Shown: piece by piece, positions 4,817-64,000 of the stretch
Numbering within the stretch: position 1 is the first letter of the stretch
How the letters are laid out: every line of letters starts with the position of its first letter
Source of the DNA: Auanema rhodensis
Lineage: Eukaryota; Animalia; Nematoda
DNA: 64,000 bases
Assembly: GCA_964057225.1 (NCBI GenBank)
Contig: OZ059898.1
Location: 8,122,001 to 8,186,000, forward strand
Direction of reading: 5' to 3'
The notes under the pieces: generated by a model
What the model was told of the DNA's origin: nothing
Database searches by the model: none
Seen by the model: the letters and a program-made list of their open reading frames with translations, nothing else
Position numbers and translations under genes: made by a program

Positions 4817-6485
4817 ATATATGCGTATATATTGTTGATTTTACCTGTGTTAACTGACAATATCGAACAATATTTCGTCGATATTGTCTAGCTCGTTCAC
4901 TTGTTCCACGCACATACAAAGCAGTCATTAAGCCAATGCTGCAAAATTGAATTCATTAAAAAGTTCATTCATTTTCATGAAATGCTCGAACGTACTTATC
5001 CATAAATCCAATAATATTATACAAGTACCAAAAACGTGTTAACACAGCTGCAATGAAGAAACCTAACATCCAATCCAACGGAATGTAGTCCATACGTGAA
5101 TTGGTAAAATCTACTAACGTAACAAAACTTCTAAACAGAAAAAAATATTAATAATTAATGAAAAAAATATTTTTTTAATTATTAAATTTCCGTACTTTTG
5201 TTGGGCATCATTCAGAATAAATCTATATATAATGGAAATGATGGCATATAAAGCAAGCCAAGTGCCATATTGCATATAAACAGCTTTCCATACCGATCCT
5301 TTCCATCTAAAATATTCATAACATTAAATTCTTTTTCTGATAAATAATATATTTTTCATTTTAATTAATATAAATTTATGTATATATATATATGTATATT
5401 GAAATCTAAGTATTATTTATAATTTTAATAATATTTCATACAGTTATTCAATCAAAGTCTTATAGTTATTGTTAAAAATAAATTTATTATGATACTTTTT
5501 ACGTCATTTTTTAATTTATATATTATATACATATACTATCAAGAATGATATTGGAATCATTAAAGTTGAACATGTTTAAATATTTAAACAATATCATATT
5601 TCAATTTCTTGTCTAATATGCGTATGCATATGTATGTATTTAAATATATATTTTTCTAATAAAAAATTAACTATTTCAAAATTCTGTTGAGTGGGCATTG
5701 TAAAGATTCAGACATTATTTCTTAGATCCTTAACATTTCGAAAAAGTTTTTTTTAAATTAGTATAGTTTGTAATTTATCTTCATTTTATCTTTGTTATTC
5801 AGTATATTTTTACGAAAACGTCGAACGAATGCACTTAGAATTCAATATATCCACTTCTCTGTTCTTTTTATTTCTTTAGAGAAAATCAAAGAGCCGGACG
5901 ATACATGGGACTTAATATTATGGACAAAAAAAAGAGAAAACGAGAGATATTGATGAGTGATCAGTTCTCTGCACCAAAGTTATGTGGTATGAACTTCTCT
6001 ATAATGTTTCATCATTTCAAAAATCAAAACATTCTATGTTTGACGAGAACAATAGGCTTTTGCTTTCCTATTCAAACTAAACTTATATAGGAAAAAATAT
6101 TTTTTTTTGTATTATATTAAGCCATTTCATTACAAGAAATTAAGCAAACCAATGATCATCATTAGATAATGAGAAAAAACAGAAAAAAATGAAAAAAAGA
6201 GAAAGAAAGAGAGAGAGAGGGAGGGGGGGGGGTAATAGAAAAAAGAGTAATAGAAATCGAGAGAAAGGTTGGTTTATGGTTGGAACCTTAGCGCTGCACA
6301 GAATATGCGTACTTTAGACGTCCTGAACTCCATGAAATACGACATATTTCAATATATTAATAATGATTAAATGAAAGAAGGAAAAAACATTTTTTTGATG
6401 TTTATCTTCTTACTAACCGGAAGAAAAGTCTCATGAATGTCCATGGTCGTGATGTGGATACGGAAAGATTGTAACTGACTGTCAT
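3186..6485 (-). CDS. Bestrophin-family Ca2+-activated anion channel, multi-exon; first intron ~1.1 kb
   Basis: Starts [30 protein letters not shown]. Contains WMLGFFI, the RFP motif (RCRKRFPTL), [14 protein letters not shown] and the Ca2+-clasp [21 protein letters not shown]. Ends TTEEVKEN*. Confidence 0.95.
4776..4810. repeat. (TA)n microsatellite in a bestrophin intron
   Basis: Perfect TA dinucleotide run. Confidence 0.9.
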
Positions 6486-9400
6486 ATTGAAATAAACTCA
6501 CGATACCATATAATTCTATTAAAATAAATAGTTAATAATATAAGATTTTTATTAAAAAATAAAATAAAGTTTAATAGAATATTTGAAATAAAAATATATA
6601 CATGTATGATATGACGAGTAGTAACGGTAAAATTTTTAAAATATACTAGTTCGATTGTATTCTTCTGTCTCAACCATAGCCTATTTCTCATATTTCTCTC
6701 CATTCAAACGTTGCGTATGTAGATTTGATATCTATAACTCGTATGTTCAATAATAGATATAACATAGAAATTGGAGAGAATGCAGAGATACAAAGATGAT
6801 TTTCTATGTCTAATATGGAAATCGGCTTTGTCCATTGCACCATCATTGCTCTACCAACACTTCACCAGTTTTATGATTTGACCATTAAAATTACTTCATG
6901 GATGATAATAGAGGAAAAATCACTTGAAATGATTACTTTTTTAACTTTTTTCAATGAATGACGTCAGACATTAAGATAAATTCTTTCTAAAAAAAGAACA
7001 ATGAAAACGGGATGTGCAATGAAGTTTAGCAAAGTGTTTTCAACAAATTATGCTGTAGAAAAGGCTGCTCTAAAGTATTATAGGACACGCCTACCAAAAA
7101 GGATATAGAATTCTTGAGGTGATATAGCTATGCAGTTTGTCTTCTTAGCCGGCTTCTCCTTCTTCTATTATTTCCTGCTAACGTATCATCATGATGCTTT
7201 GTCTTTCATGTTCCTTCCTTACGTTTAGTTGATCATTCTTTGCTGTTTAGACATTCAGGTACCTGTCATGAAGCAGCTTGAAAGGAGTGGTTTAGGGTGC
7301 GGTGTCAGAGCTTATAGCATCAGCTATTACATAGAAAAGAGTAAATATGAAAATATTCTGAAATTTTCAAAGAAAAAAAAGTCTAAAGCATCTGAAATAG
7401 AGTAGTTTTCGAATTTTTAAACATAAGGAATTGAGAAATGGTTGTACTTGTTAGTATACTGTAAGTAATCAAAAGACTTGAGAGAAAAAGCAGAGTTATA
7501 GGATTTCATTATTCAAATTATTTTTATTTTTGACATTAATATTGATTTAAGATTATTTCTTAATTTATATTTTAATAATATTATAATAATCTATTTATTG
7601 TTTTTATTTCGATGTTTCATCTCAAGTTTCCCTATTGATCTCCTCTCCAAGTTCACTCATTGTTACGTTTCACTGTTCATTGTTTTGTTATTCCTATCTC
7701 TTCATCATGTTTTCTTTTTATTCTTAAATCTTTCTATATCCTTTCAGTAATTCTCATTGTTTTTTGATTATTTTGTTTTTTCATCTAATGATCTACATCG
7801 GTACTTAGGTTTTAGGATCCCAGAAACATTTATTTCCAATCATGACATTACTTCTTATTTCCGTTTGACTTATTGAAATACATTAAAATTCTATTGAATT
7901 CACATCATTTGTGTGATTACCTATCTGCTTTTTCAGTTTTTTGTGTTCTCTGAATAATGCTATTCAGGAATAAGTCAAACAGAAGAAGAAGACCAATGAA
8001 ACGAAAAATTAAGCTTTTCTATACATTTTCATTTCAATCTAATTATTCTTATATACTAATATCTTATTAATAGAGATGGAAGATTTGGAATTTTCGATGA
8101 CGTGAGTAGTAAGCAGATTGAGGGAGTGAATGATACGCTTCTCCTATAATTGAACAAGCTTTCTACACTAATTATTTTTTTGGCAAAAACCCAAAGAGAA
8201 AAGTGACACAAGGGACTACTTCTTACTGACAACATCACCAAAGTAGAATGCCCTTCTAATTTTCGTCAAATATTCAAAATATTGAAAAGAACATTTCAAT
8301 GCCGTTTGGCTTCCTTGTTTAGGTATTCATCTTCATCGCATTCTCTTCTAAAATTAGTTCATTTTTCGATTTCAAGCTTTCCGATCTTTCATTCTCTTTC
8401 TTTCTCTCTCTGTCTCTCTCTCTCTTCTATCGTTTTCCGTATTTTATGTATCCCATCTAACTATTATATTATTTATTTCAAATCGTTTTGATGTACAAGG
8501 CCTTTTTCTTGATACCTTACATAGAATTTTGAAGTTATGTCTTTTCAAATAGTTTATTTATTAGTTTCTTTTTTCAAACTTCGTCCAAACATTTTTATTT
8601 TTTTCATATTTTTTTCTGTTAATTCTCTACCTATATCTCTCTCAATCTCTACCTCTGTCAATCTCTCTGGTGTCCCACCTCTCTCTCTCTCTTTTCTCTC
8701 TCGCTATTGCTATTTTTTGCTTCACTTAGCTGAACTTTGCTCTGCTTGAGCATATACACATGCAATATTGTTAGAAAACACCTTCTAGTGCTTTTCGATT
8801 TTCTGTAGAATTGAGAAAGAAGAAAGTATAAAAGTGATCATAAAGACACTATAATCATTGAAAATCTCGCTTCTAAGACTAATATGTGTGAAATATTCAA
8901 AGATGTGATCTTAAAACTCCAAATATTTTCTAATTTGAGTTAATACTGCTTATTCCATCACCCAACCTCATTCTATATCTCTATCTCTCTCTCTCTCTCT
9001 TTTTCTCTTTTTTTTTCGCTCTCCATATCAGATATTCTCTTCAACATCCTTTCCAATCTTTCTTCTTCTGAACCTTCAGATTATCTATTGTCTTCAGCAC
9101 GTCGTCGTTATGGTTCTTTAAAGGATCAACCTACTTCTTCATTCGCATTTCTCGGACTCAGTTGCTTTTGGGTCATAAATGAAAGCTTTCATTGGATTTT
9201 GCTAAGAAATCTAGAAAGTACTTGCACGTTTCTTTTCTTTCATTTCACCATTCACTGGAGAAAAATTTATTTTGTTTGAAAAAGGAAAAAAGAACTCTTG
9301 AACAATATAACTGGAAGGTTAAACTCGAAATTGTGAAGTTTAACGCCCTTCTTCCATTTTTTATTCTTAAAGCTCCTATAATTAAATTTGTAACGTACAA

Positions 9401-42669: not shown

Positions 42670-45600
42670 TTAGATTTTCGTTCTTTTATCATGAAGAGCT
42701 GTGAAAGACAGTCCTTTACGTTTCATGGATGGTTTTTTTTGGTTCCTAGCATTGAAACGATGCACTTCAGTGCTTTCTTTATTAGATATCGACATATAGA
42801 TATCTCCATTTCTCAATCGCCCAACTATATGAGCATTTTGGCATTCGAAGACTTCCCTTTCATCCATGATAGTTCTAAAATAGTTTGTGAGGACAATAAC
42901 AATTGCTAACAACTTACGGGGAGTTGGGGCCGCTGCAATCGGCAACTCGTACAATTTCAATGGAATCGTAATGAATAATATATAAGAAAGGAGCAGTATA
43001 TACAAATTCCATTGGCATTTGCTCCCATTCGATCAACTTTTCTCTTGTTTTAGCTCCAGTAATATTGACGAACATTCCGTAATCTCAAATATATCTATAG
43101 TAATTATAATATGAATTGCTCTTACTTTGATATGCGAGAAGTAGTTCTGTCTCAGATATTGGTAATATATTAATTGGATAGTCAGCTACATGAGCAGAAA
43201 CGAGAGCTCTACTCTCTGTCGGATTTGCTAACAAATCGACATGATAGAAAGTATCAGCACCATAAAATAATCCAATAGGACTTGATTCAATACACATTGC
43301 CGGTTCATTAGTATGGATTGACTGATACAACAATTATTCAAAAAATTAGTTTTTAAATTTACCTGATATGTCAAGAACACATCTCTTGCAGCATTATATT
43401 TCAAAACTTGGATTCTTGTAGAGTCTGCGACGCAAATAAATCTTTGGCCATGATGCTCGTAATATTTCAACAAATGCAAGTGATCACATCCGGTGATGAG
43501 ATCAGGACGGACAGAAGGAGTAGCTGACATGAGTTGACTCTAAAAACCCGTACTGAGTAATTATTTCCAAATAAAATGAATCAAACCTTCAAAGTTGAAA
43601 CTGGAAGAAGAGCCAATGAACGAATAGAACCAACTATCATAGCAACCATATTTAAATCTTCAATGATTTCCATCTGATATTTATCATTATAAAGCGTTAT
43701 GTTTTAATAAATTCTTACAGCAATTACAGAATTGAGTCCACTAATTCTTAGGGGAACTCTTGGAGACGAAAGTTGGGTGAAGAAAAGGCCTCCTTGTGCA
43801 CCAAGAATTAGAAAATCGTCAATGATCTGAAAACAAGCAAAATTGAAAATAAGTGACCAAAATCAATATTCGTACCGCAGTTGTGTGAATAGTTAGATTG
43901 TTAGGAGCAGAAAGAACTAATAGACAAGATTGTTCGCTGAACGAACTCGGCTTTCGAGTTAAAACCATTCTCCTAGTTTGAGCAGACTGTAATGCTTCGG
44001 CCCAACGTTTAGCTGTACCAATTGATTGAGCTAACATGTAAATGTTTCGTCTGAAAGATTATTAGATAACTGTTGTACGACATATAGAGCCATCATACCC
44101 ATTCATCTTAACGAGAATGATACCAGAGGTATACGCTTTTTCAGATCCTCGTATCTGGATAGGAACTTCTGCTCCTGCACGAACAACAAATTGTTCCTTC
44201 TCTAGATCGATTCGGAGGAAAGGCTTCGCCAGGTCACTGACTTTATCATGGTTAAAGAATGATATACTTCGACGATCCATCATAGCCCACGCAGTTTGCC
44301 ATTCCTTAGAGTTGCTATCATCACTAAAAATTATTCATGAGATAAATGATTAGAATCAATAGGTATTGCCAGAATAATTTGATCCATCCATTCAATTTTC
44401 CATTTGGAACTGAGTGATTATCCAAATAAAAATTGGCACATTTATCAGGCAAACCACATGTATTTACTACACGAACAGAGCACTGAGTGTGAACAATCAC
44501 ATTACAATGAGTACACCGACGAGCTTTTCCAAACTAAATCTAGATTTAAATAAAAACTGACATTTATGCTTACCGTGGATACGCCAATAAAGCAAACAGC
44601 ACATTTAATACTAAACAATCCCAGATTTCTCAAATCCTTCCATCTATGCGGAATATCATGTCTCATAGTTCCTGGTGGTCGAGCTATGCTCGAAAGACTT
44701 TTAGCCTTCTCAGGCTCTTCAGATACTATAGGAAGTTTCTCTTCAGAACTGCTCAGACTTTTCAATGGAGCAGAAGGCTGGTGAGCAGGAATAACGGGCG
44801 GTGGCATATCCTTTCTTTCGTTTAATCCTTAAAATTCACCGTAAAAATCAAACTTTCTGCTGAATTTACTCTTTCTCTTCTCTTCCAATTCTTGAAGCAA
44901 TACAGATTTTTGATTTTCCAAGTCTTCCACAACAACAGGATCCACTATTTCTGTGATGTTCTAAAATTCGTGAATAAGCTAAGAATAAAATAAATAGATT
45001 ATACCATTGAAACTTCACTTGGGGTTCGGAGAAGGGTACTGCGGCGACTAACTTTAGGTAGCTGTTTTGTATTAACTTGCGATTGTAAATAAGCAGTCAG
45101 GTTTTCATGCTGATTTAAAGCTTCTGTGAGAGAACTGATTTCCTCCTCGTATGTATCCTTCAAAAAAGGTTCATTTACGTAACATAAAAATTTTACTCAC
45201 AGTATTTTCTTTCATGGATGCTATTTCCTGAGCCATCTCCTGATTAAGTTCTCGTAAATCATCAGAATCTTTTTTATACTTTTCAATTTTTCCAACAGCA
45301 CTAGATAGCCCTTGTAAAAGGTTAGCATTTTCATCTGCAACTTTCTTCTCACGAACACTAATCTCTTCAACCTGAAACAGACCCTAGAAAAACAAAATTA
45401 TTCTCATACATACCTGAACCAATAATTTCTCATTTAATTCAGATTGTTCTTTTAGTCTTCGCTCTGTCATTTTCAAAAGATGCTCATTTTTCTTACATAA
45501 TTCTTCTAATTCTTCAACTTTGGCAGTCGATTGAGGAGATGGTACAGATTTTTGAAGCTCTTTTTCCTTTTGCATATGAGAAATTTCAGAGCGATAATCA

Positions 45601-47995
45601 AGGTGAATTTCTTTGATCTCCTCCTAAAAACAGAAACTCGTGAACACATTATCACAAACAACAAACATACAGTCAAATTTCGATTCTTCAAAACTAATCT
45701 ATCTTTCTCTGCTCTTAATTGATGCAACTCTGATTCCATGGATTTAACATTCGAGAGCGAAACTTCAAATTGCCGAATCTTAATACAGTCAAACAATTAA
45801 AATATAAAATCTCAACGTACTTTTTTAGACAATTCATCCACATCAGACCTGGCTTGTTTGGCCTCGTTTTCAGCTTTTATCTTACGATCCTTAATATAAA
45901 AATGCTTCTTTCAAAAAAAGATTTCAAATATACCCTGTATTGTTCGCATTGAGCATCGACTTCATCTAAAATTTTCTTTAAGCTTGCTAATCTTGAAACC
46001 ATTCTAGCATTATCATCTTTAAGATCTTTGGTATCAGCAGACTGCTTGTAAGACACTTCCAATTCATCATTAAGAAGAGTGATCTGAAAAATAAAATATC
46101 TGAAAAACACATATTTCAATTTTATAACCTTTTGCTCGTGTTCAATTATAGTAATTTCGAGCTTCTTGATCTGATCAAGTAAAGAATTGTTTTCTCGTTC
46201 TAATCGACCTTGTTCGGTAAGAGCTTCTGTCAGTTCATTTTGAACTGACTGTAAAGCTTTCGCATCAGCTGCATTCTTTTCTAACTAAAAAATATTCCAC
46301 TGTTAAATATCATAGGCTGAAAACTGACCTCTTGGCACTTTGTTTTCAGGGCTTCATGTTCTCTTTGTAATTGAATCAGTTGGAGCCTCATATCTGCTTT
46401 TTGCTGTTTAACCTAGTAAACATATTTGTTAAATAAATACTAAAAGCAGTAAAAACTTTTTCTGCTTCATCTACTAAATATTTATTGGTTAAATGTTGAC
46501 TGCCTTCTATGTCTTCCAGCTTTTGTGTAAGTTCCTCAATTCTCTTTCTTGAAGTAATTTCCTTATCTTTCCAATTTTCGATATCCTAGTAACAGATATA
46601 TTGTCTGTATTAGTAATTACTAAATACCTGTAATAGAGTCTCCTCCTTTTTCTTTAATTCAGACATTTTTTCATTAGTATGAGCTACAGTAGCTTTGAGT
46701 GATCCAACCTCCTCGTATAGATCTTTAGTCTAAAAGAATTAGATTAAAAAAGAAAATAATTTAAAAACTACACCATTTTATTAAAACTCATTGCACGTAT
46801 CTTATAGATCAAATAAACTCATATAATGAATTTGAAACTAATACAACTTCATAATAAATATTTGTTTTATGAACAATATACAGTTTGGGAAGCGGAAGTC
46901 ATTAATGAGCAGAATAGTTATGAACATTCCCGCCAAATTTTAAAACATGAACAAACCTCATTTGAGAGCCTAGTAACTGTTCTCTTGGGAGTGTTAATAA
47001 TATGAGTTCTCAATGTTCTTATTTCATTCAGGAATACGGTAGACTTATCGGCGTCGTCCTAATATTGTTCAAATCATAATAAAAACCATTCAGCATTATA
47101 TACCTTTGTACCAGTTCTCTCCAGAAAATCATCAAACTTAGCTTTAAAAGCTTGAGCCTCATCTAAGGCAGATTTAAGTGTCTCAATTTTAGTTAGTAGT
47201 TCATCCTTTTCGATGGATGCTTTAGCTATCTTCTCTTCTAATGAACTTATTTGATTAGTATAAGTCAAGAGAGATTGTGCATGATCACGAGATTGGTCAA
47301 GAATTTTATCTTGCAATTTGGATACCTAGTTAGGTTATACAATAAAAATTATTCCATGAAAGCGTACCTCATTTTGAGCAGCTTTGTACAGATCTTCCAG
47401 GTATCCCTCTTTATTGGTTTGGTTTTTTTTGTGTTTGGAGAGTTCACTTTGCTAAAAATAAATAATACAACTTAAATACATGTATGATGAAAATTACTAA
47501 AACTGAATTTCTTTCTACTTCTTGATTGCATTCTGCTTCTAAATCTTGTACGCGTTTTCTCAAAATAGTAATTTCTCTTTCTAGAGATTCTATCTCTTTA
47601 CTGAAAAGTCAAAATTAGAACAAAAATGGATAGAAAATATTAACCCATTCAACTTTGAATCTGCATAGCTTGTTCTTTTTTTTGATTCCGTAATGCTAAC
47701 ACTTTCACGAATAGTTACAGTTTCAAACACATCCTAAAGATGAAAAACGGATTAAAGTTTCTCAAAACTTACTACACCTTATTACTGTCTTTCAGTATTC
47801 TTACAACATTTTCATTTTCCATAACAGTACGATCCATATTTTCAGACTCATCAAGAATGTCAATTTCAATAACCTAAAACATATTCTAAAGGCTTTCAGA
47901 AGCAGTAATGTGAAACATACCTTAAGTTTTGGAGACAATGCTTTTCGTCTTGGTCTCGCAGGAGATCTGATTGGCGTTGAGTACTCAGACTCCAT
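42670..47995 (-). CDS. Citron-like coiled-coil/C1/PH/CNH protein without a kinase domain; ~26 exons
   Basis: Starts MESEYSTPIRSPARPRRKALSPK, followed by a long heptad-rich region. C1 zinc finger HDIPHRW..KCAVC..RRCTHCNVIVHTQC..VVNTC. PH domain LNGWIKL..W..AWA..AKRWAEAL. CNH domain DDFLILGAQGGLFF..LLLAYQNYGMFVN..W..MP..F. No kinase motifs upstream of these domains. Confidence 0.88.
46927..46937. promoter_or_regulatory. E2F/CDE-like site TTCCCGCCAAA in the long intron of the citron-like gene
   Basis: Exact E2F-type motif in a 227-nt intron, whereas neighbouring introns are ~45-55 nt. A CHR-like TTTGAA lies at 46831-46836. Confidence 0.5.
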
Positions 47996-48132
47996 CCCCA
48001 CCCACAAAAGATAAACTTAAAAATAAATAATGAAAAAATAAATTTTAAAGTCATAACCAATGAAAAAACAATTAACGAGCAATTATAATTATCATAATTT
48101 TACCGTACTCAGTAATAGGCGTCCTCAGAAAT

Positions 48133-48214
48133 TTTGAATTCGAGCCATAAGATTTTTGGCGGGAAAATAATACATTTGAAAGACGCCTGCTACCGGCATA
48201 TGTATACATTTGAA
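48133..48214. promoter_or_regulatory. E2F + CHR (DREAM/DRM-type) element cluster upstream of the citron-like gene
   Basis: TTTGGCGGGAAA at 48155-48166, and TTTGAA at 48133, 48175 and 48209, about 140-220 nt upstream of the ATG. Confidence 0.55.
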
Positions 48215-48411
48215 TTGTGACCTTATATATTATTTATGAGCGCACGAGCTTCTTGTTTAAAATAATTGTATTATTATAAAAGCCACTAAAACCAATATTA
48301 AAAATTGACAAATTTATTAAAGCAAAGGTTTGCAAGGTTAACATAAATTGACAGAATTCACAAAAATTAATTGTTTCCAACAAGCAGATGATAACATTTC
48401 CTCGAGGTAAA

Positions 48412-49425
48412 CTATTTTGAAGATACCATCAGATTTTTTCGTTTCTGCTCCAATTGCTCTTCATACATTAGCAACTGTTGCATAAACCCGTTGTTTGGTT
48501 TTGCAACTGAAAAATTTGTATGATCGAAGGATGAAAGGTGAACAACCTGGTCTTATTTCTCTTATTGTGTTATATGCGTCATGCAAGTTTTCACCATGAA
48601 CTTTCATCATATATGCCAAAATTAACGTTGTAGAACGCGATATACCAGCATTGCAATGTACAAAAACCTAAAAAGTAGAATAATAATTTATGAAATGAAC
48701 TACAACTAGCACAAATTAATACTTTATAACTAACCTTTCCCCCCGCTTCTATAGCAGATCTCATAAAATTAACTACTTCTTCGAAATAATCAATTAGACG
48801 CATTGATGGTAAATCTATAGCATCAATGTACTTGTATATAAAATCGTTACTGAAAAAATTAGGAATTCCACTGGCAGCATTAACAATATGAGTTATTTTC
48901 AGTTTTTTTAGCTCTTCAATTTCTCGGGCCGCATCTTGGCTTCCTAGATACATTGAAATGTTTTTATTTAATTCAGTAAATATACCTAAAAAAACTCCTT
49001 CGCAGCATTTAGCAATCTGCAAATCAGGTTTCAAATCCAAAACAAATCCCATTCGATGACAATGACGATCTAAGAAAAAAATGAAGAACAAATAAAAAAA
49101 ATTAAAAAAACCAATGTGGGGGTTATCTACCCGCGAAAAGCTGCCATCCACATTTCTTCTCTCTTCCAAAACAGTTCCGTCTTCTTGAACTACACTAAAG
49201 ATTGTATAATAAAGAGCTCATTTGTTAGGAAATGTATCATAAATACATGTTAAAAAAATATTGCTCTAAGAATGATTCGTTTGAAATTATACGAAATCTT
49301 GAGAATATGATTTTTCTTAATACAATTTAAAAAAAAATTAATATGGGATCAGCAGGTTTCACTTACGTTACTACAGTTTTTCTTAAACTTCCTTTTTTGT
49401 CCTGAATATCCGACAACAAAACCAT
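48412..49425 (-). CDS. DUSP19: Atypical dual-specificity phosphatase, DUSP19-like; 6 exons
   Basis: MVLLSDIQDKKGSLRKTVVT..GFVLDLKPDLQ..FLGSQDAA..KITHIVNAA..IDLP..VFVHCNAGISRS..PNNGFMQQL. The catalytic HCxxGxxR is intact. The N-terminus and GSQDAA match DUSP19. Confidence 0.9.
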
Positions 49426-49756
49426 CAAAGTGATTTCAATAATGGTATTGGTTGCTACTGCTGCAAACGCGCCCTAACGCGAAGCGTCGCAAAATCACTG
49501 AAATCGTTTGAACAGGAAACTCCCGGGACGTGACCCGCTGATCCGTTATATATATATCATGTTTTAGACTCGTGTATTAATTTTGTATTTTACTATATTC
49601 TTAGGAAAATTTTCTGAATAATTCAATAATATTAGCAAGCTTGAAAATTTCGTAGAATCGGTTAAATTACTCAAATGGTTAAAAACAAACTTTTAGGTTT
49701 CTTATTCTTAGCTCCCCTTTGTTCAAAACAGGGACTAAGTAGAAACTATATAAAGT

Positions 49757-52713
49757 ATGACTTTGGATACAACACCTAAAAGGACAACCGATTTTCGATC
49801 CATCAAACATTCTAGATTTCATCATGGAAATAATATGAGAATAACTGTTGCTGCTAATCAAGTAAGTATCTCTTTTTGTTTGTTTACAACTACATTTTCT
49901 CAGGGTGGAAGAAAATATATGGAAGATCGCGTTCAGATCGAAACGTTTAGAAGCAGTGATGGTACTATTTTATTCACATTTCTTGGTGTTTATGATGGGC
50001 ATGGAGGTTGCGAAGCAAGTGAATACGTTCGAAAAAATTTGATGAATAATATTATGGTTAGGAGCAATTTTTTATTAGTCTAGTATACAAACTATGCTTG
50101 TTAGAATCAAGAATTATTTTATTCCGAAGATGATGACGATATTTTGGAAGCTATTCGTCTTGGATTTTTAGAAACTCACCATCAAATGTGGAAAGTTGTT
50201 GGTGAGAATAAATATTCACATATATATATTTTAACTTATATTGTTTTCAGAAACTTGGCCACGAACTGCATCTGGTTATTCTAGTACTGCAGGAACTACG
50301 GCCAGCATAGCTATTATCAGGGGTGGAAAGTTGTATACAGGTCACGTGGGTGATTCAGCCATATTCTTAGGAAAAAGAAGTGCAACAAATTAAATATAAA
50401 AAAACTGTACAGTTGTTTTTCTCAGATAACCAAACTATGTGTGTTGTACCTGAACGTTTAACAATTGATCACAAGCCGGAAAGCGAAGATGAACAAGCCA
50501 GAATACAGATTGCCGGCGGACAAGTTATGATGAAAAGTGGAGTAAATAGAGTTGTATGGACCCGACCTCTTCGAGGACATACTGGTCCTGTTCGAAGAAG
50601 TACTCCTACTGAGAACATACCTTTTCTGGCTGTGGCAAGGAGTTTAGGTAACCTACAGTTTGTTACTTCTATATTGTTCGTATTACAGGTGATCTGTGGT
50701 CATATTGTGAAGCTACAAAGGAGTTTATTGTCTCTCCAGATCCTGATTTGAATGTTCGTGATCTCACTGGTGCGCTTACTTAGTATTTAAGTTTAGTATG
50801 TAATAAATTTATATTTCAGAAGATGATTGCTTTATCGTTCTTGCATCTGACGGGCTTACCAATGTTATTAATGCACTGGATGTATGTTTGTTTTACTCTT
50901 CTGATAATGTTAAGGATTCGTTCAGATCGTTTTAATTGTGGATGAAGATGAAGAATTAACAAAAAAGAGTTTCACAGGTCAGCGGACTGACTATATTGTA
51001 AAGTTTTCTATTATTATATTTATATTAGGAGGATATTTTCAGACACGTAGTAAACATACTAACAATGCTCGATCATTACTTCTTGCTGCATTAAAAAATT
51101 GGAGGACTTTTCGAGCTGATAATATCAGTGCTATCGTGGTACAGATGAATGAGTTATCTATTTATACCCTATTGTTTCTTAGGCTGTGCTCGATCCTGTG
51201 GTTGCAGTCAACCATGATGAGGACATAGCTTCTGTAGAAGAGCAGCTTGTTGTTGATCAGTCTATTGATGAAATGTTCTGTGTTGATCCTGAAGCTATGA
51301 TTAGGGTTTCGCCCTTTTGCAGTCAAAAACTGGTAACATATCGTACACCTTTGCTGTATCAAGGTGCTCTTGATAATAATTTTTCATGTATGTTGCACTT
51401 TATAACTCTTCTCTAATTCTACTGTCATATTATAGCTGTGAGTTATCGTGGTCCTGGCTTCCTTACTCACGAAGAAGAGCGGCATCTTGAAGAACGATAT
51501 AACATGGCCGAAATGGAAGCAGAAAAGAATAAAGATGATGACAATAAAGAAATCACAGATTTATCGACACCTGTTACTCCAGAAAAACCAGCAGAGGTAA
51601 CGTATTTGAATTTTTCGAATAATAACCATTATTTCTTTCAGGTGTCGCCTAGTTTGCGATTGTCTCGTTCATCGAAAAGATCAACTCCTATTAACATATT
51701 TAATCGTGATAAATTACGCAATAGTGCTAAGCGAGTAAAATCAGCGTTGGACATTGTGAGCTTATTTACAACTTTCTTTCTATTATCTTTGTTATTGTAC
51801 AGGCTTCCACAAAGGATGGATCAGTTAAAGAAAACAGAATGGATTCAGAAGAAGAAAATGGCTCTTTGCTTAATGTATTTAACTTTTTCTCTTTTTTCTT
51901 TAACAAAATTTCTACAGGAATCAACATTAGATGAACTTAGCACGCCGGAACGTAGAGTAACGCGAAGCTGCGGAACTACAACCCCTACTAATAAAAATGT
52001 ATTTCCTCCTTTTTCATATTTACTAATTGTATTTTATAGGTTTCAATTCCGCAAACTAAAACTGATCCCCAAAATACTAAGGTTTTATAGAACACAAATA
52101 ATTTGTATAATTTATTTTTAGAACGAATTAACTACTTCACTTCTCCCTTTCAACGTCAATGACTCTGCTTTTACCATGGTCACACGGTTTGTTCTTACAT
52201 ATAATAACTTTGTTAATTATCTGTTTAGTTCGAAGGATAAGCAAAATGGAATTAATGGTACTCCTGTCGCAACACCAAAAACACCCTCTGCTTACAAAAC
52301 ACCAACTAATAAAGTTTTGTTGTCGGCAAAGGTAGGAAATTTTGAAAATAACCAGTTTTATTCCTTATATAGGGAAGTCGCAAAAGGCCTCATGCATCAA
52401 GTGTATCATCCGGAGCAACTCCTCTTGTAAATAGGCTAACCATTGAGTCTCCTATGATTCACTCTTCTACTCCTAAAATCAGAAGTGCACCCACTACGCC
52501 GGTGAAGGTATCGTATATAGGACAATACATTTACAAAATAAATCATTTAACTTGTAGAACTCTGTGCCTTCTGAACTATTGGGAAGCAAATGGTCATTAT
52601 CTAAATTGGATGAGTTGAAATCAACTATTCGAGAAGAAGAGCCTCCCAGTAAGATTCGGAGAATATACGGTTTTGTTCGCCGACTTGTCGGTTTAACCAG
52701 CACCCAATCTTAA
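49757..52713 (+). CDS. ppm-1.D: PP2C-family phosphatase PPM1D/Wip1 orthologue; ~17 exons
   Basis: [40 protein letters not shown], the PPM1D-specific B-loop [39 protein letters not shown] and RADN. The C-terminal tail is long and S/T-P rich, ending LTSTQS*. Confidence 0.95.
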
Positions 52714-53335
52714 GTAAAATGTGCCTTTATTTATGTAGGATATACTTTTAAGGTTGTCATACAATGTCTGAACCTATACTGACATCACTTGTACGATAAG
52801 TGCTTTCTTTTTAGATTAGTCTATGATTGTTCATAGCTTTTGATCTCCATGTATAGGAACTATTCCTCAACTTATATTTCTTGACACATGTCTTATAATT
52901 ATTTTACCAATTGCTAATTTTTCAATTTATATTGTGTATTGTTAGATCCGGTAATGTATAATAATATGAACTCAATATTGTTAATTATTTGAGTTCTTCC
53001 TATAATATATTATGCTCAAAGGAATTTCAAGATATCTGACAGTTTTTTTTAACTTTAACTGCATTTTCATTTATGAATTATTGATGAACAAACAAGAAAA
53101 TATAAGCTTATAACGAGAAAGAGAACATCAAATAAGAAATATTAATTGGCTTAATATAATTTTAATTCCATTAATTGAAATATGGTTCATGAACGAGTAG
53201 TTAAGGACCCGGATACTAAAATAAATATTTACATATGATGGCCATAAATATGTTGAATTTTTTTCTAATTATGAAGACACATTACGTACTGCATGCGTGG
53301 GTTATTTCGTGGTAGTCACCAAGGGTTACTTCGTG

Positions 53336-53349
53336 GTAGTCATAGCAAC
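53336..53349 (+). promoter_or_regulatory. X-box (DAF-19/RFX site) GTAGTCATAGCAAC
   Basis: Matches all 14 positions of the C. elegans X-box consensus RTHNYYWTRRNRAC. It ends 55 nt before the ATG at 53405. Confidence 0.75.
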
Positions 53350-53404
53350 AATCCTAAAGTAAGCCTCAACGTGTGGCGGTGTTTCCCAAAATTTCTTGGT
53401 TGGG

Positions 53405-54415
53405 ATGAAAAACAAAGTAAGTTCATTCTGTTGTATTTTTTTACTATAATTTTGAGGTTTTTAGGAAAGCGCTTGCATATATATTCAATATCGATGGAGA
53501 AAAAAATTAAAACGAGATTCAATAATAGCTAATAGACTTTATCAAATGTATGTAAATTGCATTATAAGCTATCTCACGTTTTATTTAGTGAAAAATGGAA
53601 AGGGATTGAAAGAATTTCACTGAAGAATGATGAACTAATAAAAAAACTTAGAAAATTACAAAAAGAAAAGGTAAAAAGATACTGTAACATGCTTATAGTT
53701 AGTGCTTTTATAGAAATTTGAAATAGCAAAATATGAGACAATTTTGAATCGACCAGCTCGGGAAGTCAATAATTGCTTAAAGAATTCGAGAAAAAAAATA
53801 ATTGAACATTTGAAAGATGAAGATGAAATTGAAGAGCGTATTCGCCGTATTAAGATGGATAGGGCTGCGCGAATACTGCAGAGATCAGTAAGTATTTCGA
53901 TTATTTCTTTCCTATAAATTTTGTTTCAGTTCCGTAATTATTATAAGAAACTTTTGATAAATAGGTACTGGGGCAAAATCACGAATATCAAACCAAAGCG
54001 AAGGTTAGAATTATTGGAAGAAATTCGTAATCGTCTTGAAAAACGAAACACTATTCGAACTGATACATTGGAAAACCTTAAGTCTAAGGTATCATATAAG
54101 TCTAATATAATTGAGAAATATATTTATTTTTACAGATAGCTGAACATTCACAGAGAATAGAAAATGATGTAATTAAACTGGTATCTCGTGATATCCTTAT
54201 TCGCCAAATGAAACGAGATTGCAACACTTTTCAAAGTATGTTTCAATTTCATGTTCCAATTTTAATACAAATTTTCAGAACTATCAAACGAGAACGATGA
54301 ATACAAGATCCTCGAAAAGTTATCATGCCCACCTTCATGTGCAGTTATTAAAGCTCAAAGAATTCATGAAAAGGAAATGGAAAAAATCCAAGATCTTTTG
54401 TACAGCAATTTATGA
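53405..54415 (+). CDS. IQCB1: IQ-motif/coiled-coil protein resembling the C-terminal half of IQCB1/NPHP5 (248 aa); exons 53405-53416, 53465-53547, 53589-53670, 53714-53887, 53930-54088, 54136-54235, 54279-54415
   Basis: Seven exons joined by GT-AG introns form one open frame of 747 nt. IQ motifs SACIYIQYRWR and AARILQRSFR. Colinear similarity to recalled human IQCB1: W.....KRRLEL / W.....RRVEL, RDILIRQM / REALIAQI, KAQRIH..EMEKIQ / KAKQAH..TLKHIQ. The gene model is solid; the orthology is inferred. Confidence 0.7.
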
Positions 54416-54487
54416 AAAAACCTTTACTAAATAATAATCACTAAGTAATAATCAGTCACAAACTTAACAATAAATATAAATTTATAA

Positions 54488-55695
54488 TCAATTATTAGTC
54501 AAAGGAATTCGTATATTACCTAAACGAATAAGCTCTTTTCCATATTTTTCATATAGGCTGCCACCTTCCTGGAAAAACAGTAAGTAAAAAAGAAAATCAT
54601 ATTGGTATCAACCTGAAAATCTGGAGCTGGTTCCCTCATTGTTAATGCTATTCTTCGACCTTTGATATGTCTTGATAAAACTCCATGCTTCCATTGATAT
54701 CTGAATGTTAAAAGTTAAATAAAGAAAAGGAAATTTAAAATACCGGATATCATCTGCCATACATATTAAAGATCGATGAGGCATTAGTACGTAACAAACT
54801 TGTTTTGTTGTTTCATTTGCTAGTGTCATGACGGATCCAGAAAGCAAATTTATACTGAACAGGAATAATCTAAAACTGAGGCAACAACAAAAAACCTTAT
54901 TAATCGATTTCCCCATATCCACATATCATCCTGATGCATTTCAATAGCGCTTTTCTTATTCTCATCATATTCCAAATTACACATCTCAAAAGGTTGGTAT
55001 TCTCCTAATCTAAGATATCATGTTTCCGTTAATTATCGTCCTGTGTCATAAGACCAATTATTACCTATTAGGAGAAAACTGTTCCATTTTATTCAATAAA
55101 AAATCGGCGTACTCTGGCATACCTGCATATTTTAAACGTATATTTCATTTCTAGTCAAACGTTGCTCACCCACAAAAGTATCAGTTTTAACTTTTTTGTG
55201 TTTAAAATTCACTTTCGGACCATAATCCTAAACTCATCACTTCCGAAACAAGTAGGGAAACATAATCAGCTAATCCAGCATTCTATAGTGCATACCTGTT
55301 TCCGCCTGCCTGACTGTGATGGAACCCAATTAACCTCGTCAATCATTTCCATTATATCATTTTCCTCTTGTTCAGTTAGAAATTCTTCTATTAATAACAA
55401 TCCATTTAATTTAATAGTTATGCATTGTTCAGGTATAATATCATTCAAAACTAAAAATTGTCAAGCTTGAAGCAACTTTAAAAATATAAAAATAGGTACC
55501 ATCAAAAATTTCCTGAGTAGTAGAAGATGAGTTCAAGTTTGCAATCTTTACTCCTGCTTGGAGTTGATTTGAATAAACAAAAAACTCATAATCTTTATAT
55601 GGATCATCATCTTTTCTTAGTTTAAGCACACGATCTGTATTTTCACACAATGCGCAAAACCTGATCCCTTTGCATCCGCAAGTGACGGTATCCAT
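54488..55695 (-). CDS. nmad-1: AlkB-family 2OG-Fe(II) dioxygenase ALKBH4 (N6-methyladenine demethylase NMAD-1); 8 exons
   Basis: MDTVTCGCKGIRFCALCE, W.PSQSGRRKQDYGPKVNFK, F.GMPEY, FEMCNLEY, HxD in AIEMHQDDMWIWG, WKHG and RRIALTMRE are all ALKBH4 signatures. Confidence 0.95.
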
Positions 55696-56195
55696 ATTCA
55701 CTGCAATAATCTTATGGTTTACTGTTTGCTTACGCTTCGATGGAATCTGATATATTTGAGACTCAGCTTTTTTTTTTACAAAATTTTATAATCTACAACA
55801 AAAGCTTGAAACAATATTTATATTGCACGAAATTAATTTATTTATAAAAGGAGTCAAAAGATTTTCAAATTTTGGTTCGTAAGGATATGCTTGTAAGGAT
55901 TCAAAATTTTGTCTTATCAAAAAATACTGTTAAAACATACAAAATTTCAAAATTTAATTCGCCGTGAAACCGAAAATAGATATGTAGCTCTTTTGATTGC
56001 ATAACACGTGATTATGCGTACAATCGTAAAAAAATTCTATCATTTTTAAAAGTGCTCAGTACAAACTTTAGTTAATACTTTGTGATTCATTTTTTAATAC
56101 TGAATTGTTATACATTTTAGTTATTAAGCATATTAAGGTTTAAAATTGGAGATAATTGAATGTAAGTGATAACTCAAATATTTATTAATCAAACT

Positions 56196-60038
<3,843 letters not shown>

Positions 60039-63000: not shown

Positions 63001-63310
63001 GTAATATAACTTTCTTTCTCATCATATTATCGATATTCATAAAGAGCACAAGGTGAGGGAGGTGGATTAAATTAATCCTTATATTTTCTTTTACAAAACA
63101 CTACAAACAATACTGGCTTATCTAGCGATCAGTACTTGCTGAGGTGACACCTATCTATCTCATCTATATATGCTTCAACGAATATGCATAAATTGCTTCC
63201 AGATATTATTTTTCTTTGACCACATGTACACAATTTTAGCAAATTGTCCACGAATTTCACACTGCTCCTTTCTCACGTTGGATGCTCCAAGCGCTTGCAT
63301 ATTCTTACTC

Positions 63311-63324
63311 TCTCCCTCTCTCTC

Positions 63325-63395
<71 letters not shown>
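63311..63395. repeat. (CT)n microsatellite
   Basis: ~85 nt nearly perfect CT tract. Confidence 0.95.
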
Positions 63396-63397
<2 letters not shown>

Positions 63398-64000
63398 TTC
63401 TCTTTTCGTTCTTCATATATTTTCCAGTCTCCCTCTCCATTTTTTTAACATTTTTTTTGTCGTTTCATTTTTCTTCTTTCAAAAATAAGTTGTCCATGAC
63501 GGTTACTACGAATCTATCATAGAGCGTTATGCTTCTTAATCATGAGCTATATGTTTTGATCCCTTTAATCAAGCTATTTGCGTTGTATATCATCGGCTTG
63601 CATAGGCGACTCACCCTTCGTTATTATTTTTCTGTGTTTTACGACTATCTTTATTTGTTCTACTCATATATTTCATTATTTCATCTGTCTATTATTTCCT
63701 ATTCCTCATTACATTGTGCTAGGGTCCAGTTATTGATGAAAGTATGAATCTTCCTTTTTACCTCTTCCGAAAATTTTTGTGGCTTTTTAGTGTGTTAATT
63801 TTCATAGAAATTCTGAAGGTTCATAGTAGTTTTTGTTTATAGTGTGTGAACCTTGAAAAAAAGGTTTTGTTTTAATGATAGAACAAAGTTTTGCCACCTG
63901 TCGTTATTATATCTGAAGTAGGTAATATTGCCTCAAACGTTCTTCAACGAAGCTTGAAAATTACTAGCTTCGGAACTTTTAAGAGCTGCTTTGATTGATC

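Follow-up and report, generated by a model that had tools for sequence, protein, structure and literature searches.

A transcribed seven-exon gene of Auanema encodes a small protein with two IQ motifs downstream of a candidate X-box

Results

A genuine protein-coding nematode gene lies at 53405-54415 on the forward strand of the window, the 64-kb stretch of Auanema rhodensis DNA that was analysed, and its transcripts show the splicing that the model proposes. The encoded protein of 248 amino acids carries two IQ motifs, is predicted to be largely helical, and has a counterpart in Auanema sp. JU1783. A putative RFX/DAF-19 site (X-box) stands before its start codon. The best reading of these features is that the protein is probably a lineage-restricted IQ/coiled-coil calmodulin adaptor of nematode sensory cilia.

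Gene structure and transcription

The gene has seven exons and six introns, and scripted joining of the exons gives an open frame of 747 nt, which is 248 codons plus TGA (Table 1). All six introns have GT..AG ends and are 41-48 nt long, in a window whose base composition is 30% G+C. In the list of open reading frames the gene appears as fragments only, as the original prediction had pointed out. The list is of the prokaryotic style, and this is the usual look of a spliced eukaryotic gene in it. The N-terminus of the protein reads MKNKESACIYIQ. The protein as a whole is basic (pI ~10) and rich in K, R, E, I and L.

Transcription was examined with four sets of transcript-like Logan contigs, from four runs of a single study, aligned to 53000-54800. 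Each contig set contains about 0.44-0.58 of the words of 53200-54600. Across the four-run contig sets, the six introns are all skipped cleanly at the predicted GT..AG places, and two single contigs, one from run X2 (1802 nt) and one from run X3 (1759 nt), carry all six joints. That the runs were RNA was beforehand a guess, and it is accepted here because the introns are precisely removed in the contigs. The seven-exon, 248-aa frame had been proposed from the letters of the DNA, with spliced RNA named as a check. Both the exon joining and the joints in the contigs of the four runs bear the model out.

Transcript contigs start at 53290 and at 53333 and continue unbroken to exon 1. Within this transcribed leader, an in-frame TAA is present at 53360-53362, 45 nt 5' of the ATG. 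There is no room for an upstream coding exon, the possibility that the original prediction had proposed to check. The two contig starts are 5' of the X-box, which means that either the start site is further upstream or other RNA overlaps this region.

Two low-depth contigs were also seen at the 5' side of the gene. One of them, from run X1 (53149-53444), joins 53215 to 53290 with CT..AC ends and continues across exon 1 as far as intron 1. On the minus strand, this joint would read as a 74-nt intron, and its TTTTAG acceptor would be a good one. In the other low-depth contig, introns 2 and 3 are removed and intron 1 is retained. The low-depth contigs over the promoter possibly come from antisense or divergent RNA, or from an unspliced isoform.

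At the 3' side, the gene faces a convergent minus-strand neighbour, whose CT..AC joints (54567>54612 and 54700>54744) are found on contigs shared with the 248-aa gene. The two stop codons are about 80 nt apart, that of the neighbour being at ~54497-54499 (-). Because the transcript contigs of the two genes merge, the 3' untranslated regions of the 248-aa gene and of the convergent 2OG-Fe(II) oxygenase (AlkB-like) gene probably overlap.

Table 1. Features of the 248-aa gene and its flanks (positions in the window)
Feature	Position	Strand	Details
Imperfect 24-bp tandem duplication	53299-53346	+	19/24 identical; left half of the X-box comes from the second copy
X-box (putative RFX/DAF-19 site), GTAGTCATAGCAAC	53336-53349	+	-69 to -56 from the ATG
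Exon 1	53405-53416	+	ATG and 3 codons, MKNK; joint 53416>53465 in X2 and X3 contigs
Exon 2	53465-53547	+	Contains IQ motif 1 at 53471-53524, ACIYIQYRWRKKLKRDSI
Exon 3	53589-53670	+	Heptad-like helix RISLKNDELIKKLRKLQKEK
Exon 4	53714-53887	+	KYETILNRPAR block at 53729-53761; first half of IQ motif 2 at 53855-53887
Exon 5	53930-54088	+	Second half of IQ motif 2 at 53930-53959; PKRRLEL at 53993-54013
Exon 6	54136-54235	+	Spliced in transcript contigs
Exon 7	54279-54415	+	Conserved C-terminal HE.EMEKI; TGA stop at 54413-54415
Short 3' region	54416-54500	+	AATAAA at 54469; faces the 3' end of the convergent minus-strand gene

The orthologue in Auanema sp. JU1783

An exhaustive phmmer search of 1.84 billion representative proteins with exon 4 (58 aa) as the query returned six matches, and the sole true relative among them was P0005 of Auanema sp. 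JU1783. The other five were rejected as repeat-rich proteins that were matched in several stretches; in four of these five, Pfam found STAND NTPase, reverse transcriptase, peptidase or other unrelated domains. P0005 is deposited as a 178-aa 'unnamed protein product' (GCA_943334845.2). In the deposited model, the acceptor of exon 6 is placed 7 nt too far downstream (after ATTGCAG instead of between TTTTAAG and ATT; 6683-6817 of the locus, L001). The frame is shifted by this wrong acceptor, and the product is cut to 178 aa. Genes made of short exons are easily lost or mis-modelled, and this deposited annotation is an example.

After re-modelling, the Auanema sp. JU1783 gene has seven exons with phases identical to those of the 248-aa gene, and it encodes 245 aa. 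The two proteins are 47% identical over the full length. By codon position, the identity between the two genes is 0.61/0.73/0.34, which reads as the signature of constrained coding sequence. Both proteins start with M[KR]NKE. KYETILNRPAR and PKRRLEL do not vary between them, and HE.EMEKI is conserved at the C-terminus. The surroundings are also the same: window positions 44000-60000 and L001 hold six consecutive genes with the same order and strands, namely CNH/PH (citron-like), DSPc, PP2C, the IQ gene, the convergent 2OG-Fe(II) oxygenase and a kinase. The 2OG-Fe(II) oxygenase family was assigned from the Auanema sp. JU1783 locus. The proteins of the window itself are missing from the protein database, and the genome is apparently unannotated there.

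Judged by exon phases, neighbours and identity, P0005 is the true orthologue of the 248-aa protein. Conservation was sampled in these two known members only. By sequence, they form a narrow nematode family, for which the protein databases have just a single entry, the truncated and unnamed model of Auanema sp. JU1783.

IQ motifs and predicted helices

IQ motifs were scored with the pattern [ILV]Qxxx[RK]xxxx[RK]xx[hydrophobic]. IQ motif 1 (aa 11-24, IQYRWRKKLKRDSI) is near the very N-terminus, and IQ motif 2 (aa 114-127, LQRSFRNYYKKLLI) is split by intron 4. Two matches were observed, against 0.04 on average in composition-matched shuffles (P(>=2) = 0.0009). The two motifs are about 100 residues apart and keep their positions in Auanema sp. 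JU1783, where the second basic residue is shifted by one. The two IQ-type motifs claimed in the original prediction are borne out by this excess over expectation and by the kept positions. In the Auanema sp. JU1783 orthologue, Pfam scored the IQ family (PF00612) at aa 7-19 with 19.1 bits, just under the gathering cut-off of 20.3, and gave nothing else of note. No Pfam match was obtained with the five longer exon pieces of the window gene, including exon 2. The neighbours from two ESM Atlas searches were all generic IQ clusters, below 0.9.

AlphaFold modelled residues 1-169 of the Auanema sp. JU1783 protein with helices at 2-59, 64-70, 74-82, 92-134 and 138-168; the model is entirely helical and of low confidence (mean pLDDT 62). 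A crude heptad count marked heptad-like sequence between the two IQ motifs. The helical character of the protein is a safe prediction, and a coiled coil between the IQ motifs is plausible. A coiled coil had been part of the original prediction; its helical middle agrees with the AlphaFold model, while the coiled coil itself is loosely supported by the heptad count.

The candidate X-box and its conservation

The X-box is the only match to the consensus GTHNYYATRRNAAC in the 64 kb. Tandem Repeats Finder, at its lowest score setting, reported nothing over the duplication at 53299-53346 that the site partly overlaps. The promoter of the Auanema sp. JU1783 gene has GTTGCCATGGTGAT at -63 to -50 from the ATG (L001 5938-5951). 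On the other strand this site reads ATCACCATGGCAAC, with one mismatch to the X-box consensus, and the count is one or two depending on the strand. The preferred zone of X-boxes is -50 to -200 from the ATG, and conservation in orthologous promoters is used as a criterion for ciliary genes (PMC1794439). With an X-box 50-70 nt 5' of the ATG in both species, RFX/DAF-19 control and a ciliary role of the 248-aa gene are plausible. The upstream X-box of the original prediction is thus found where it was claimed, and the matching distance in Auanema sp. JU1783 strengthens the ciliary inference. From the X-box alone, expression in ciliated neurons would be expected. Among the observations made here, the two promoter sites are the strongest pointer to a ciliary role.

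The same sites could be explained in another way, in which the gene encodes an IQ/coiled-coil protein without a ciliary role, and the X-box-like sites arose by chance or serve a transcript that overlaps the 5' end. A chance match to the X-box consensus somewhere in a window is common, as it was seen in 36 of 100 shuffled windows, which is about one in three. The Auanema sp. JU1783 site deviates from the consensus as described, and the low-depth CT..AC joint suggests an RNA from the minus strand that covers exon 1 and the promoter. Chance, however, does not easily account for a site at this distance before the ATG of the orthologous gene in both species, or for the 10-mer core GTTGCCATGG, which is unique in the 12.7-kb Auanema sp. 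JU1783 locus and expected there 0.01 times. Furthermore, no protein-coding gene diverges from this promoter, and the upstream PP2C gene is on the same strand. We consider the non-ciliary explanation unlikely.

No recognised counterpart of the 248-aa gene was found in the published C. elegans X-box lists examined, and Rfam gave no match over 52000-55500. Two non-coding blocks 3' of PP2C are near-identical between the species (52800-52870 and 52949-52966 in the window, 5490-5560 and 5630-5647 in L001). They contain, for example, TGTATAGGAACT.TTCCT and TCCGGTAATGTATAATAA; identity in the adjoining protein is only 47%. Within the second block is UGUAUAAUA, which presumably fits a PUF/FBF-type site. 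Elsewhere in the window, a long CT/TC dinucleotide microsatellite at 63170-63520 appears as SLSLSL... in the list of open reading frames.

Comparison with named IQ families

The 248-aa protein might also be a fast-evolving orthologue of a named gene, such as IQCD, IQCG, IQCK, IQCE, a member of a similar IQ family, or an annotated C. elegans gene. To reach C. elegans by synteny, a word-index search was made with the conserved dual-specificity phosphatase neighbour, and it found only Auanema. Since even this phosphatase gave nothing else, blanks in such searches say little on C. elegans or other taxa. Some of the Atlas neighbour clusters combine IQ with PF27107 (DRC11_N) and MFI_C, all at levels too low to count. 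Against such an orthologue, no match above noise to a named family was obtained in Pfam, PDB or Atlas. Nematodes are not known to have motile cilia, which argues against the dynein-regulatory IQ proteins. Orthology to one of these named genes seems improbable.

The original prediction had gone further and named the protein a truncated nematode IQCB1/NPHP5. Such a minimal orthologue would keep the IQ-coiled coil-IQ-CEP290-binding half, would have lost the N-terminal BBSome-binding half, and would act together with CEP-290 in the transition zone. In that prediction, the motifs of the 248-aa protein were taken to be putatively collinear with the C-terminal half of human IQCB1. At 598 aa, NPHP5 combines IQ motifs and coiled coils with sites for interaction with the BBSome and, at the C-terminus, a site that binds CEP290 (PMC6334983). 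The family is reported to be restricted to opisthokonts (PMC4092220). An IQ motif, a helical or coiled stretch, a second IQ motif and a helical tail, with an IQ spacing of ~100 residues, do resemble this NPHP5 outline (PMC6334983). The conserved X-box points to ciliary control, and the elements P..V, AAR.LQR, RR.EL, R..L..Q and A...HE.EMEKI are conserved in Auanema sp. JU1783.

Several observations stand against this orthology. Auanema sp. JU1783 conserves neither the W in 'W.....RR.EL' nor the Q that ends 'KA...H....IQ', and sparse motifs of this kind are easily found between helices rich in K, R, E and L. IQ motifs with a central helical, heptad-like stretch are present in the 248-aa protein, but they do not single out NPHP5. 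No IQCB1 signal was given by the exhaustive phmmer search with exon 4 across the 1.84 billion representatives, or by the Pfam, PDB, Atlas and index searches. Searches of the PDB by sequence and by profile gave p53, ribosomal protein S20 and FliG, all of them noise, and two metagenome scans for patterns from exons 4 and 5 returned no relatives. Index searches used P0005 and profile A4 as queries and, among proteins of ~93-311 aa, recovered nothing beyond P0005 itself. These index searches cover proteins of ~0.55-1.75 times the query length, so a 598-aa protein is outside their reach. A literature search found no naming of a nematode NPHP5.

The part of the claim that stands is the absence of the N-terminal half. 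The region with the BBSome sites, about the first half of the 598-aa NPHP5, is certainly missing from the 248-aa protein, as shown by the upstream in-frame stop and by the same start in the Auanema sp. JU1783 protein. For the orthology itself, no IQCB1 signal was found in searches of which most are blind to a 598-aa protein, and we regard it as improbable. At present, the 248-aa protein would not be filed under IQCB1/NPHP5 or another named IQ family.

Discussion

We favour the reading of the 248-aa protein as a small calcium/calmodulin adaptor of sensory cilia. Its predicted features follow each other from the N-terminal IQ motif 1 through a heptad-like helix to the conserved, proline-containing linker KYETILNRPAR. 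A charged helix that ends in IQ motif 2, PKRRLEL, further helices and the conserved C-terminal HE.EMEKI would come after it. In this proposed mechanism, RFX/DAF-19 would switch the gene on in ciliated sensory neurons, and each IQ motif would hold a calmodulin or a calmodulin-like light chain. Dimerisation, or binding to a partner in the cilium or at its base, may be the task of the helical middle and the tail.

If the ciliary inference holds, a small and tractable calmodulin-binding component would be added to the RFX-controlled ciliary genes of nematodes. A nematode NPHP5, if true, would be the larger prize, as the CEP290-NPHP5 interaction would be open to study in a worm model. A CEP-290/NPHP5 module would then be kept at the nematode transition zone without the BBSome-binding domain, and the invariant KYETILNRPAR and PKRRLEL would mark partner-binding surfaces.

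Compared with known systems, the 248-aa protein is like IQCB1/NPHP5 in that IQ motifs flank helical or coiled sequence, a helical tail follows, and the gene is putatively linked to the cilium. It differs in its size (248 aa versus 598 aa) and in the absent N-terminal, BBSome-interacting part, and no similarity was detected in the searches run. With PF00612 proteins in general it shares two consensus IQ motifs with the hydrophobic anchor, while its orthologue scores 19.1 bits, just short of the cut-off of 20.3; the IQ motif is uninformative as to which IQ family the protein belongs. With the X-box (RFX/DAF-19) regulon it shares a candidate X-box that fits the consensus, 56-69 nt from the ATG, and that is kept in the orthologue. 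P0005 of Auanema sp. JU1783 has exon phases, neighbours and 47% identity in common with the 248-aa protein, and its deposited model of 178 aa becomes 245 aa when corrected.
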